A stretch of DNA of 64,000 nt from Podarcis melisellensis (lineage: Eukaryota): assembly GCA_964234715.1 (NCBI GenBank), contig OZ174275.1, one strand, 5' to 3'. The notes beneath the pieces were generated by a model. The model had not been told where the DNA came from and searched no databases. It worked only from the letters and a program-made list of their open reading frames with translations. Of this stretch, positions 28,148 through 59,652 are shown piece after piece. The first letter of the stretch is position 1. Each line of letters begins with the position of its first letter. A program made the translations under genes and the position numbers.

Positions 28148-28621
28148 CAAGGACGGGGAACTTTTTTGGCTCCACAGGCCAGATCCTTATCAGCCAGTGC
28201 TCACCTGTCGAAATCCCTTTCCCCCTGATTTTAAATTAGAAGCGGGGGCGGGGGAGACCCGCAAAAGCCTTTGTGAATCTCCTTGCCCCTTTATGATTAC
28301 AGTGAGATCAGAGATGTGAAAGGAAACACAGGAGACTCACCCAGGCTTTTGCAAGCCTCCTTTCTCTTCCCTTTTAACTACCCAATCTCAGGGATTTAAA
28401 GGGGAAGAGGGAGGAGGCTTGCAAAAAGTATGAGTCTCCTGCCCTACCCAATCTTCTGTCCCAACTCTGCTCATCAGCTGAGTGAAAATTAAATCCTTCT
28501 GCCTAGGCTGCACAATCCTGTTCCATCCTGAGAACAGGGTGGCACAGGCAACAGAGCTTTACACTCATTGGCTGATGGGCACGCCAAGACTGGATTATGG
28601 ACCAAAGGTTCCCCACCCCTG
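28148..28621. mobile_element. hAT non-autonomous element with internal fold-back
   Basis: TIRs CAAGGACGGGGAAC / GTTCCCCACCCCTG; TSD gcctagag / gcttaaag. Confidence 0.8.
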
Positions 28622-30540: not shown

Positions 30541-31140
30541 CTAGCTGAAGCTTCCAGACCAGGCCCAAGGGCAGCTGCACGTAAAGCACACTGCAGTACA
30601 GTAATCCAGTCTTGAAGTTACCAATGTGTTAATAACAGCAGCCAGACTATTCTCATTCAGATACAACATAGCTAGCGTACTAAACAAAGGTGGTAAAAGG
30701 CACTCCACATAATGGGCTTGAAATGACATGCTATGCACCTGCTCCTTCAAGGTGAGCACAACTCTGTCCAGAAGTGGCAACTGGCCTATCTTCCAGATAT
30801 GGAAACAACCTACCCACAGAGTCTCCATCTTCTCAATGTTCAAACCCAATTTATTGGCCATCATCCAGTCCACCACTGCATTCAGAGCCAATGAGAGAGG
30901 GAGACAACTACCTCTAGTTCTGTCCCCATCCTCTCTGCTGAGTTCTACAAGGACAACACCAAGGAGGAGGAAGCTGACAGGAAGTCCATCCTCTGGACTA
31001 GATGTAAGAAAGAAGGCAGGCAGGTTGAAGGGTGGGGCAGAATGAGTTTGGTGGGACAGTGCAATATTTGCAGCCTTCACTGCACTGGGGCAAAAACAGT
31101 GCCCTGCTGAACCTCATAGCACAAGTGTCATAGGGCCAAA
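30541..31140 (-). mobile_element. L2 LINE ORF2 fragment
   Basis: ORF 30541-31080(-): LNAVVDWMMANKLGLNIEKMETLWV ... LAAVINTLVTSRLDYC. Confidence 0.85.
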
Positions 31141-50559: not shown

Positions 50560-51140
50560 TCAAGGATATACATTACAAAGTGTCTTAAAAATGTAAAAAT
50601 ATGCAATGAAACAAAACACACAGTATGTGTCTTAAATATTAACAATATAATAATTGGAATTACTAAAGTCAAATGGAAGATTAGAAACATAGCTGTCAAC
50701 GTTTCCCTTTTTTAAAGGGAAATTCCCTTATTCCGAATGGGATTCCTCGCAAGAAAAGGGAAAAGTTGACAGCTATGCCAAAATAAAAAAGGTCTTCTAC
50801 AAATGCCTTAAGACTAAAAAGAAAGGTGTGCATCATATGTCCACAGGCATGGCATTCCACACTCGAGGTACCACCACTGGAAAGGCTCTGTCTCAGAGAC
50901 CCAGCCAGCCAATTTAATCTCATTTAGGGAAGATCCTCTGTTGCTGACCTTTCGAGGCTTATGAGGGAGCAGATGCTCCCTGAGGTACAGTAACTTGCCC
51001 TAAAGTCATTTGCCACTTAAAAGGCTAAAGCCAGCATTTTAGAGGCTAAAACTGCACTTTAAATACAGTTCAGTGACCACTGAATTGAGCAATCTGATCT
51101 GGGGTTCCTAAATACCAATCTGGAAACTGCATTTTGAACT
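50560..51140 (-). mobile_element. Old L2 3' region, interrupted by a mini-MITE
   Basis: ggcattccacac...gaaaggctctgtctc reads RAFSSG..VWNA-like on the minus strand. Confidence 0.45.
50688..50777. mobile_element. 90-bp mini-MITE
   Basis: TIR CATAGCTGTCAAC.TTTCCCTTTT / AAAAGGGAAA.GTTGACAGCTATG; no clear TSD. Confidence 0.75.
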
Positions 51141-54775: not shown

Positions 54776-56640
54776 GGAGACAGGAGGTAGAAATCTCTAT
54801 AAAGACTGCATTATGAGGCACATATTTTAAAGATGACTTTGGATTACTGTTCTCATTCGATAGCCTGAGACATATGGCCTGGCATTAAAACATTGCTTCA
54901 TTCTCCTGGCAATTAATTTTTTGGCTGGGAGCTAGCATAGCATAGTGCCAACAAGATCTTGCGTAAATAGGATTTTCCAGTACTCTGTAAACCTGCTATG
55001 AGGGATCAGTGACACTTCATAAAAACTACTTCAGTTGCAAGATTGGTTGCAAGACTGAAACACACACTAAGTAAACAAAAAATTCAATAGCTCTTCTCCA
55101 GTACATGCTCAAGAACACTTAGCCTCTCAGAACTCTGGGGAGCCTGTCTGCCAAGCCATCCATGGAGAGGCTAAAGCAGCTGCTCTACTCTGAACTTGGA
55201 TATGGTCTTCACTTTTCCTCTCTTTCTAGAGATTCAAGCATTGGCCCCTTGTGCTTTGTCCTCTCCTATAACAGGGAGCACCCACAATGGGGCATGTTGC
55301 AAATATGGCCCTCTAGGATACAACAGAGTTGTACACAGCTAGGTACTTTTGATGGACAGCAAATCTTGGCATCAGCAAAGCCTACTGAATTCACTTTGGT
55401 GCACTGCAATAATTTTATAATGATCTAAATATAAATATGATCCCCTTTACATTATTGCTGTCACACTAAATCGTGTCAAATATTTAAAAAGTGATGCAGA
55501 ACTACACTGCTGTTTTCACCATTTATTTTAAAAACAAACAATAGAAATGGTTATTGTTAGCAGCAGGGTTAGAGCCAATCCCAATGTTCTTGTAGCCTGC
55601 CTTTCAGTTACAATTCTGCATTGTGAAAATTTGTCAGATGGTTTGTATTTCCCTATTAGAAGCATATTTTTCCCTTTCAGTGCTCTTATTAAATTAGTAG
55701 CTTCCTTAGGTTTAGATTTATGTTCAGAGAGTCAAATTATCTTCCTTTTTAAAAAGCCTCCCTGAGCCGCTTTCCCAGCTTAGTTCAGCTGCAGGAAACT
55801 ATAGCACTCCAAATTCTTACTTTCTTCATAAACCACACCTGTTATATTTGATATTGCTTTCAAATGAACAAAAACTGTTAATTCCGTATCTATGCAGAGT
55901 AAGGGAGAATTTAGATGGTTAAGCAAAAACTTCTCAATTTGTTTAACAGTTGCCTGTTATACAATCGGATTTGAATTGTTCCACACTAGTTTCTTAGATA
56001 CATAAACGTAAATGTACACAAATCTCAGGAACATGCAGCAACAACTAATATACATCATCCACTAATATACATAATCCTTTCAGACATTCTGGTCCTTATC
56101 TGAAATTCAGCTTATCTGGAATATAAATGCAAATTCTGCCATTAAAGGAAACTATGGAGGGGGCAGTTTAACTGTCCTCCCCACCCTGTGTCTCAGGCCA
56201 CATTTGATCATGCCTCAGGAATGCCTAGATCTCTGACTGACTCACAATTTCTACAATTGTGCAAGGCTTTTATTATTATTTCAGCAGTTCTGCGCACAAA
56301 CTGCTTTGCTTAAAACAAATGTAAGAGATTTAATTATATTTCTATAGTTATGAGACATAGTATTGTTATTATTTAAATTCATATACCACCCTTCATCTGA
56401 AGATCTCAGGGTTTCACAGCATAAAGTACAAGACAAAAACACAAAATACATACTAAAACTAAAATAAAAGAAAACAATAACACCCCCAACACATTTAAAA
56501 GGATATATAGGATGTTAATCAGCCAAAAGCATGGTTGAAGAGGAAAATATAAAAAGATGCACAAACCCAGTTATAAAACTGCCAAGTTTGAAAAGACAGC
56601 TATAGAGATTCAAATATTTTGACTGGTGAAACTTGCATTC

Positions 56641-57464
56641 TTACTGCTTACTGGTGCAATAAGATATATAAAATTTGCATGCCATGTCATGCCAGCTGGG
56701 AAGATAATGCATCCAATCACGAGACCATGGGCAAATTCACACAACTTCACACAAGAACAGGCAACACTGATAAGATAGTTTTACCAGGCTGCACCAAAGC
56801 CAAGCACACACACACACAACCCCTCCACCATTTCTGGTAAGAGACATCACAGTCTCTCTAGCCATTGGCTGAGCTGCTGTGATGTCAGCCAAATTAGCTG
56901 ATCCAGTAATTGTCATTGAATGCTCATGAACATTAAATTTTAAATGAATAAATTTGCAGCATAAAGGGCATTAGGACAGATGGAGCTGTAAGCTGTTGGA
57001 GGGAAACGCTGCAGAGAATGTGTTACGAGCCCACCAATAAGTAATGGCACTGCAAACAAAAAATATGCCCAAATTTTTTTGGGGGGGGGCAAGTCCCCAC
57101 TTTTAATATATTGTTATTTCTAGCCTTGCAATTTGAAAATGTTATTTCTAGAGGATCTCAGCAGTAGCCGTGGTCTTTAAATCAAGAGGATGTGCCACAC
57201 AAGCTGTACTTGAGTACCTATTAGAAGATACTGAGGAGGGACAACTTCTCAAGGGTTGAATATATTGGCTCAGTATGATACAATAGCAGAGTTTACAGTC
57301 TTTTCTTTAAAATGCTGTAATTGGCTTCTCAAAGGTACTGGAAAAGTCGTAATAGAAAAGGTCAATGGCAATATATATTTGTACAATAGTGAGATGCATT
57401 ATCTTCCCAGCTGGCATGACATGGCATGTAATTTTACACACCATGCTGCACCAGCATGTGGTAA
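56641..57464. repeat. Long-range inverted repeat in unique sequence (perfect 36-bp core)
   Basis: 56678-56713 catgccatgtcatgccagctgggaagataatgcatc is the exact reverse complement of 57393-57428; imperfect extension to 56641 and 57464. Confidence 0.92.
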
Positions 57465-58424
57465 CTAAGAGAGACACTGATCTCTGCTTGCTAAAATCCC
57501 AAGAACAATTGCATGCCATCATTGTAAATGACCTGTGGATGCACAGCAGTTTACATTCACATAGGTTTGCTAATCTTTCTAACAGTATATGCAAACAAAA
57601 CGACTAATGGCGCTACAGAAGTCTGGAGACAGAAAATGGCATTCTGTTTATATAGAAGTTTACTTTTCTTGCTGTTTCCCTCAGTTCAGACACATGGTTC
57701 TGGCGTGTAACTAAATCCCCATGTATTTCCATGAATTCACACTGTCTTGCTTCTTCTCGTTTTATTAATCTGGACCTGTGCATATTACCGTAACTTCCTG
57801 AGTCAAATACTCACAGCAGAAAAACAAAACAAAACAAAAGCTACATACATGATAATATATTTTCTGTATAAGAAAAGAACATTGTAAGAATTTGTAACTA
57901 TGATGGAGTCCTGTGAAATCAAGCACAAGATATTCTAGGACAGAAAAGGCACTGGTAAGAATGGCCACAAGGGCCTGTGAAAGGTCCCAGGTTCAATCCT
58001 TGGGACTGCATGTTTAAAACATTGGGTAGCTAGTGATGAGAATGACCTGATGAACCCTAGATGCTGGAAAGCCGCTGCCCATCACAGAAACAGCAAATTG
58101 GGTATAAAGAAAATGAGATTAAGCTAGAGATAATGGTGCAAACTGCCATGCCTGATCCAACAGTTTTAAAAATAAGATTAGGCTACAGATTGTTCTAGAC
58201 TTGGATCTGATCCAAAATATATCAAGAATTTTGAGCTTCCCACACCTGACAAAGAGCATAGGCCCCTAATCTTAGATCATTGCCCTTTGACCCTTCTTCA
58301 CATGTATTTGAAAGGAAGGGGCAGTTGGAAGGGCTTCATACTTGGCAAAAGAAAGGTTTTACATCTTAGATCTTGCTATGGATATACAATATATGTAGGA
58401 ATACTAGGAAGCAAGGGATTTGAA

Positions 58425-58475: not shown

Positions 58476-59652
58476 TAACAAACAGTTATTTACCAATGCT
58501 GAGAAAAGGCCCAATCTCATGTGACTATTTACATGGTAAAGGTTTGTTGGTTCACATGTTTACCTAGCCAAATGGACTTTTCACTATCACCTTCTGGTGC
58601 TCACATATCTGCTAAAATATGCCACATCTTATAGCTTCTCATAGCTCTACCAAAACTAAAGTATCCTAAGAGATGATAAATTTCACATTGGCTTGCCTAC
58701 TGAAGGCTTTCTTGGTGTATATTTTTTTCTTAATTCATTCCAGATCCCTTGTAAATTGTAAAACTGTCATCACATTCTGGTGAATTTGCCCCCCCCCCCA
58801 ATTTAGGAATTGTAATATCACTTCCATCTAATCCTGGAGAAACACCACATATTAATGAAGTACTATAGTGAAGATGGTCTGTTGTGGCTTTCAGAGCCCT
58901 TCAGTCTAGTGGAGCCTTTTAGCAATAGAACAGAAGTTCATAGTTTGCCTCATCCATTTGGCCTTGTAGAGCTCATCTGTGGTATTTCAGCTTCTCAGGT
59001 TCCTACACACGTAGGTTAGAGGAAATGTTGCTGATGATCAGCAAAACAGTGAAAGTGCCTATACATAAAATGTTAAGGTAGAGTAATTTCTCATCGCCAT
59101 AGTAAGTGAAAACATTTTCAAACTGACAGTGTCCTTTTAAAAAACAGGCTGCACAAGGATTTTGCCCAAGACTGTGAAAAATTGGTTTTCAAACCAGGAT
59201 AGTTATTTTAATGCTTTAGTGTGCATTGGTAAGTACTGCATAATCTGTCTCTAAACAATAATAATATGTTAAACAGTAATCATGTAAAAAGTAAAAAAAA
59301 AAGTGACTTAAAATAGATCTTCCAGTCTCTCTGAAACAAAGCAAATTGTAAATAACTTGACATCCACATTCAGTGTTAATACCCCCATAAAACACAAGCC
59401 AATGCCACCCCAGGTGTGTGAGTGGCACCAGAGATGAAATTTTGTTCACTGTCTAAACACACCAGCATTGTTCCTAGAGTAATATTTTGTGGTTTCAAAC
59501 AAGTCAAAAGCAATAGTATTAGCTGAGAGTTTTTTTTATGTGGCTTTTTTCAATGTGGCTTTTTTTGAGAATCCCCCTTTCCCTTTTTGCAAAAATCTTC
59601 CCCTGCTGCCACCACTTTGGCATCAGAAGCACATATGAAGGTAGGATGTTCT

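Follow-up and report, generated by a model that had tools for sequence, protein, structure and literature searches.

A perfect core inside a decayed inverted repeat with one arm in a conserved non-coding element in Podarcis melisellensis

Long-range RNA duplexes within introns are known from the RBFOX RNA bridges and from the editing-complementary sequences of ADAR. A different process acts on the DNA itself. Template switching turns near-perfect inverted repeats into perfect ones and homogenises their arms (PMC5453318, PMC8604942). In the documented corrections the spacer ranges from a few to about 70 nt, and the searches covered spacers up to 70 nt or 'nearby' sequence (PMC5453318, PMC8604942). 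Here we describe an inverted repeat in a 64,000-nt stretch of Podarcis melisellensis DNA (assembly GCA_964234715.1, contig OZ174275.1), referred to below as the window. The repeat is single-copy and has two age layers; its right arm is ancestral and is the only one under constraint, and its left arm evolves neutrally. An initial annotation, made from the letters of the window, had read it as a conserved RNA duplex.

Geometry, decay and copy number of the repeat

An inverted-repeat search returned two 36-nt cores (Table 1) which are exact reverse complements of each other and are separated by 679 nt; shuffling the window never yielded a match. Gapped alignment extends the arms to 56641-56720 against 57464-57389. 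The 11 substitutions of the outer part comprise 9 transitions and 2 transversions and come with an indel of 1 nt, and at the inner end the 3-nt bulge is followed by TCAC, paired with GTGA. The description given in the initial annotation was thus accurate for the perfect 36-bp repeat with arms about 680 nt apart, for the outer 37 nt with 11 substitutions, 9 of them transitions (to which the indel is added), and for the pairing that resumes inward of the bulge. Its faint further inward similarity did not hold up: beyond TCAC/GTGA the local score is 9, against a shuffle mean of 10.4. Extension in the outward direction likewise gave nothing over chance.

Table 1. Coordinates of the repeat and of the conserved features around it (positions in the window)
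Feature	Position	Strand	Description
Left arm, outer decayed part	56641-56677		37 nt; 11 substitutions and 1 indel relative to the right arm, all assigned to the left lineage
Left arm, perfect core	56678-56713		36 nt; proposed recipient of the re-copying
Left arm, inner end	56714-56720		3-nt bulge CAA, then TCAC as the last 4 matching bases
Spacer	56721-57388		Left two thirds fast-evolving except for an island at 56950-56999; conserved block from about 57150
Right arm	57389-57464		Core at 57393-57428; ancestral copy, proposed donor
Conserved non-coding block	57150-57550		Holds the right arm; 80-94% identical to L001 and about 80% to L003, unchanged in close relatives
Local hairpin inside the right arm	57406-57461	-	About 56 nt; conserved in three lizard lineages

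The perfect tract sits within older, diverged homology, marked by the 11 substitutions and the indel on its outer side and by the 3-nt indel on its inner side. The core has 0 differences in 36 nt and the outer part 11 in 37 (Fisher p 1.5e-4), and under even decay a perfect run of at least 36 nt has a chance of 0.001-0.005 for a single repeat. These p values are per repeat, as the uneven decay is a post hoc pick out of a very large scan. The outer parts of the arms have diverged by a K2P distance of 0.43 +/- 0.15. This perfect core in a decayed surround supports the idea, already put forward in the initial annotation, of an old inverted duplication in two age layers. The share of transitions (9/11) is an ordinary neutral bias (p 0.24 against an expectation of 67%). 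In RNA from the plus strand the outer transitions would give 4 G.U and 5 A.C oppositions, and in RNA from the minus strand 5 and 4. Pairing-compatible transitions therefore amount to 4/9 or 5/9, as chance predicts, which argues that pairing was not preferentially kept.

Contigs from public runs were placed on 56200-57900 at 80% likeness, among them those of a sister species (species B), which is about 2% different. At this likeness both arms are single-copy in their own genome and in species B. The interval 56599-57800 has single-copy depth (about 48) in the own-species run and in species B, and the 64-kb window holds no further copies of the arms. The own-species contigs end exactly inside the arms (56383-56707, 56684-57422 and 57399-57810), as expected from 31-mers that are common to just these two places. 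One species-B contig of 1931 nt covers 56516-57810. Since it spans the whole repeat, the structure is no assembly artefact and is older than the split of the two species.

No target-site duplication of at least 5 nt was found at any boundary within +/-10 nt, where the matches are chance ones of 3-4 nt; a possible TA duplication at the arms is palindromic and so uninformative. The single copy in two genomes refutes a young or middle-aged transposon family. The initial annotation had judged that this is not a young transposon and that no target-site duplication is present, and both judgements agree with our results: no direct repeat of at least 5 nt flanks the arms, and at 80% likeness neither genome has the many copies that would carry these arms as terminal inverted repeats.

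Several neighbouring features of the window were recorded as well. Just upstream of the left arm, 56361-56545 is a very high-copy SINE-like repeat, the mean word depth of which in two genomes runs from the thousands into the tens of thousands; RNA reads from its many copies are present in the RNA run described below. Within the spacer, 56842-56885 contains a local palindrome, CATCACAG ... CTGTGATG, around CCATTGGCT; a 3-4-fold depth bump in both genomes indicates a few related copies elsewhere. ARAGORN and Rfam (53.8 bits) both place a tRNA-Lys (CTT) on the minus strand at 49970-50044, which may be a genuine gene, or else the head region of a SINE that derives from a tRNA. Two open reading frames, 30541-31080 (minus strand) and 44611-44916 (plus strand), resemble C-terminal parts of a LINE reverse-transcriptase frame with its 3' tail (for example SRLDYC and APNLCNALP); the former has no Pfam match at E 0.01. 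Finally, hairpin-type inverted repeats with arms of 42 and 36 nt and loops of 6-8 nt lie at 50688-50777 and 28347-28426, and are typical of small foldback or MITE-like elements unrelated to the main repeat.

The conserved block around the right arm

Distant orthologues were reached by using spurious open reading frames across the right arm as search handles. A 95-aa frame of this kind (57310-57594, minus strand) matched P0001 on the Logan contig L001 (2347 nt, SRR32623559), and a scan that took in all cluster representatives returned P0002 on L002 (1666 nt, ERR14042001) and P0003 on L003 (950 nt, SRR22184594); the clusters of all three are singletons. Protein-word searches with P0001 and with the plus-strand frame gave no new matches, exact look-ups of three window frames in the contig collection returned no record, and a scan of the core sequence against JGI metagenome contigs gave no match. 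The run SRR32623559 is a DNA library for which an agamid lizard, Japalura splendida, was swabbed orally (PMC12336156), and L001 is most likely host DNA of this species. We call it the Japalura contig below.

The Japalura contig is collinear with the window, with a main block at 57106-57744 and weak matches in the same order at 56947-57018, 57989-58076 and 58502-58563. This collinearity agrees with an orthologue rather than with a copy of a repeat, as does the single-copy depth. In 50-nt bins across 57150-57549 the identity is 0.80, 0.88, 0.94, 0.88, 0.92, 0.92, 0.90 and 0.84. Outside the block it is 0.51-0.66 at the edges and 0.24-0.40 in most other bins. A small conserved island at 56950-56999 is 72% identical to the Japalura contig, amid an otherwise unalignable spacer. 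The third reptile contig, L003, carries the block at about 80% identity. The right arm is identical at 70 of 74 positions in the Japalura contig and is also present in L003, and its core is kept at 35/36 and 33/36 positions, respectively. Within the block the core is no better conserved than the neighbouring sequence.

Close relatives show the same block from another side. In species B no difference falls at 57194-57603 among those listed, the four runs having 44 further places beyond the listed ones, which by our own count include 6 of the 31 differences of the contig that spans the repeat; the surrounding DNA is 2-3% different. L002 has 0 differences in the stretches of the block that it covers, 57194-57286 and 57393-57600, and its spacer part and flank differ by 3.8% and 1.6%. 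As L002 is an independent case of an unchanged block, we argue that the repeat region holds the 6 unlisted differences of species B. Up to 57193 in the spacer, the differences from the relatives are 3-4%.

L002 itself has an unusual order: it reads as the reverse complement of 58443-57393 (right flank and right outer arm), then the core, then 56714-57286 forward, and it has most of the differences of species B. Both orientations of the spacer give identical k-mer sets, because the perfect core is 36 nt long and k is 31. The contig ends at 57286, which leaves a stub of 106 nt. A graph stub of that length is probably clipped as a tip. That the spacer is truly inverted in this sample is an unlikely reading; the other is a graph artefact. 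Under either reading, the junction of the core with the left inner sequence places the left arm in a third close species, with its core unchanged.

A coding exon at the block was considered and rejected: in either species each of the six frames contains stops, and a 1-nt indel breaks the only long frame, where dN/dS is 1.15 (L001) and 0.59 (L003). Neither the long open reading frames of the window nor all the frames across the locus had a Pfam match. Rfam at gathering thresholds returned one tRNA only in the whole window, and a cut-off relaxed to E 10 yielded no match near the locus. To judge from this pattern of conservation, the block at 57150-57550 is a strongly constrained non-coding element under purifying selection. 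Since this block of about 400 nt reaches well past the arm, the conservation of the right arm is explained by its position there and not by pairing with the left arm.

The right arm also contains a local hairpin (Table 1). On the minus strand it folds at -29.5 kcal/mol (z -3.0) in the window and at -34.0 kcal/mol (z -4.8) in the Japalura contig. Among the changes between the three species, 4 transitions keep G.U pairs on the minus strand and 2 transversions break pairs; double compensatory changes were not seen in these three species. The apex of the hairpin (57431-57434) lies 2-3 nt off the outer edge of the perfect core. The hairpin resembles a microRNA precursor, but it has no Rfam match up to E 10 and the conservation spans 400 nt, far more than the hairpin.

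Origin and history of the left arm

At 11/11 outer sites the right arms of the window and of the Japalura contig agree, and that of L003 mostly agrees too. This assigns the changes to the left arm. Seven of the 11 are GC-to-AT changes, and the left outer part has gone down from about 44% to about 29% G+C, the core being at 50%. Such a drop is expected for unconstrained DNA in a genome of 38% G+C.

The left arm lies in DNA that cannot be aligned to the Japalura contig. An inverted counterpart of the arm was sought in the 1.3 kb upstream of the right arm of that contig, and the best score was 10, against a shuffle mean of 9.8. As a control, the decayed outer part of the window alone was detectable by the same test (score 15, 0/500 shuffles). 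The Japalura lineage therefore either lacks the left arm or has it decayed beyond about 60% identity. Two lineage-derived states are common to both arms: A at 57419 (G in L001 and L003) with T at 56687, and C at 57449 (T in L001 and L003) with G at 56656. The first pair is in the core and so dates the last copying only. The second is one outer site, and hints that the whole left arm may be younger than the split from the L001 and L003 lineages.

In the left arm, species B departs from the window at 3 sites in 80 nt (56648, 56693 and 56720), which is the neutral rate. The C>T at 56720 occurs in species B and in L002. At 56693, inside the core, species B has a C>G change, and with the right arm as outgroup the G is the derived state in that species. 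The single G>C place in the run is 56470, so the partner position 57413 is unchanged in species B and the C>G is uncompensated. This one substitution (likelihood ratio about 3) weakly suggests that the left core currently behaves as neutral DNA. From these comparisons, the right arm is evidently the original, and the left arm an inverted copy that is specific to this lineage and mutates freely.

We consider it probable, with considerable room for doubt, that the repeat is an old inverted 80-nt partial copy of the conserved element, the inner 36-44 nt of which were later re-copied from the constrained arm. According to this scheme, the element, with the right arm in its middle, would be under purifying selection unrelated to the left arm. 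An 80-nt piece of the element would have been copied in inverted orientation about 680 nt upstream in this lizard lineage, giving rise to the left arm. Free of constraint, the left outer 37 nt would have diverged as neutral DNA does, with the ordinary GC-to-AT bias. Later, but ahead of the radiation of the present genus and of the split of the sister species, the right arm would have been re-copied over 36-44 nt onto the left arm, either by a replication template switch between the imperfect arms (quasipalindrome correction) or by short-tract ectopic gene conversion of the non-crossover type, as candidate mechanisms. Such copying would have removed the differences built up until then, so that a perfect core remained within decayed flanks. 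The left core would have been decaying again since that event, as seen in the C>G of the sister species. Neutral divergence per lineage since then would be at least about 0.015 and probably less than about 0.08.

In this history, it is the re-copying event and its mechanism that we infer rather than observe. A neutral copy would carry about 11 changes in the core, with a chance of none of about 2e-5, so the core must be either young or constrained. The position of the core edge next to the hairpin apex makes the latter a plausible point for a template switch. The right arm, the proposed donor, matches the outgroup state, and none of the species recovered has a left arm in its state before the event. 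Ectopic conversion is expected to be rare when the arms are 80 nt long and only about 70% alike. A K2P distance of 0.43 is large for a copy that postdates the agamid split, and the dating is accordingly loose.

Alternative explanations and comparison with known systems

If the core is not young it must be constrained, and selection acting on it, whether through RNA or DNA, is in our opinion unlikely. At the DNA level, the 36-nt core could be a protein-binding module kept in both copies, its complementarity being a by-product. Read by eye, the core holds CAGCTG, AGATAA and repeated CATG motifs; it stands at 50% G+C, compared with about 29% in the left outer part after its drift, and conservation of the right core is strong in both L001 and L003. 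However, the original core varies between lineages, and more than 4 mismatches would roughly be expected between two such modules while the outer part reached K = 0.43. The C>G of species B abolishes the CAGCTG motif, and the core is not conserved above its neighbours in the block. We therefore regard such a module as improbable.

We give equally little credence to a single recent inverted duplication of 80 nt with an error-prone or mutation-clustered outer part, or to an extreme draw among the many repeats scanned. The repeat was chosen post hoc from very many windows, with a per-repeat chance of 0.001-0.005. Five of the outer changes are G-to-A within 19 nt, three of them in a run of TG/TA dinucleotides, so they are perhaps not independent. 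Against a single event, the error rates of break-induced and template-switch synthesis are far below 30% divergence. A cytidine-deaminase signature was also considered for the outer part and rejected, since the sequence contexts do not match (WRC 1/5, TC 0/5). With all changes in one lineage, neutral decay predicts the roughly 11 core changes given above, with the same very small chance of seeing none.

The claim of the initial annotation was that the cores pair in a transcript and that selection keeps them complementary. Folding is compatible with such a role, whether as RNA bridge, ADAR substrate or hairpin-RNA precursor: the minimum-energy folds of either strand contain the 36-bp duplex (-275 and -283 kcal/mol, z -7.4 and -9.2). 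The uneven decay of the arms demands some explanation, and the conserved hairpin of the right arm, with its G.U-keeping changes on the minus strand, means that the block may have an RNA role. A small 2017 run of a relative, the RNA or DNA kind of which is a guess, contains a contig of 165 nt with a depth of 2 and one difference, which covers the right arm (57357-57521). This contig inside the block may derive from pre-mRNA, from carried-over genomic DNA or from a target of capture; it is a weak sign of transcription, and may be DNA. By contrast, one RNA run of a close relative (tissue unspecified) gave zero reads on 56599-57800 in 1.9 Gb, and no gene or exon was recognised around the repeat in the window.

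The comparison of the arms also goes against this duplex. The annotation had proposed a test of whether both arms are syntenic, single-copy and covarying. Single-copy status holds for both of them, and deep conservation holds for the right arm but not for the left: distant lizards conserve one arm only, and between sister species the left arm accumulates changes as fast as neutral DNA. As to covariation, species B supplies the one core substitution seen, 56693 C>G, a transversion that disrupts the pair and has no partner change at 57413. The outer transitions preserve pairing as often as chance would, and Rfam offers no matching family. With one arm conserved and a core change uncompensated, the claim of a core held by selection as an RNA duplex is not supported, and we find pairing in a transcript quite improbable as the reason for the perfect core.

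It is very improbable, too, that the left arm is a lineage-specific regulatory addition to the ancient conserved element, selected in the genus for its core, the perfect 36-nt complement of which competes with the conserved hairpin in a minus-strand transcript or in unwound DNA and so makes the element switch between two structures. Least probable of all, and to our mind barely tenable, is that a very old, decayed non-autonomous DNA transposon of about 824 bp left the arms as its terminal inverted repeats and was partly co-opted as a conserved element: the size and the inverted ends are compatible and a TA duplication is possible, but further copies are lacking, both in the window and, at 80% likeness or more, in two genomes, there is no target-site duplication of at least 5 nt and no transposase remnant (Pfam, frames across the locus), the conserved block continues about 90-140 nt past the outer end of the right arm, and the perfect core would stay unexplained.

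Perfect complementarity within decayed arms is thus, on its own, no evidence of selection for RNA pairing. At this locus one arm is held by the unrelated constraint of an element, and the other looks like a refreshed neutral copy. If the re-copying is true, arms unusually far apart (about 680 nt) were homogenised in the germ line of a vertebrate, which is relevant to the frequency with which long perfect stems arise by template switching or short ectopic conversion. New hairpin RNAs can be built from such stems. In addition, our analysis marks a previously unmarked, strongly constrained element of about 400 nt with an internal conserved hairpin.

Compared with known systems, the locus resembles MITEs and other non-autonomous DNA transposons in having inverted ends of about 80 nt around about 700 nt, and differs from them in its single copy, in the lack of a target-site duplication and in that one end lies inside an orthologous conserved block. 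With RBFOX bridges and ADAR duplexes it shares complementary tracts hundreds of nucleotides apart in non-repetitive DNA, which would form a long duplex if transcribed; here, however, one arm is conserved, covariation is absent and no transcript was seen in one RNA run. The block itself is like vertebrate conserved non-coding elements, with sharp-edged conservation across distant lizards, no coding signal and reduced divergence between close relatives, although an inverted partial copy beside such a block is unusual. The last comparison is with quasipalindrome template-switch correction (Ripley's model; PMC5453318, PMC8604942, PMC8794818). The spacer of 679 nt is about 10 times the documented ones, the tract is long (36-44 nt), and the prior state is unseen, so that we infer membership of the locus in this class. 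As in that model, a perfect tract lies in a pre-existing imperfect repeat, the right arm is unchanged relative to the outgroups, and the left arm carries a tract that ends by a hairpin apex, a configuration for which selection is unnecessary.
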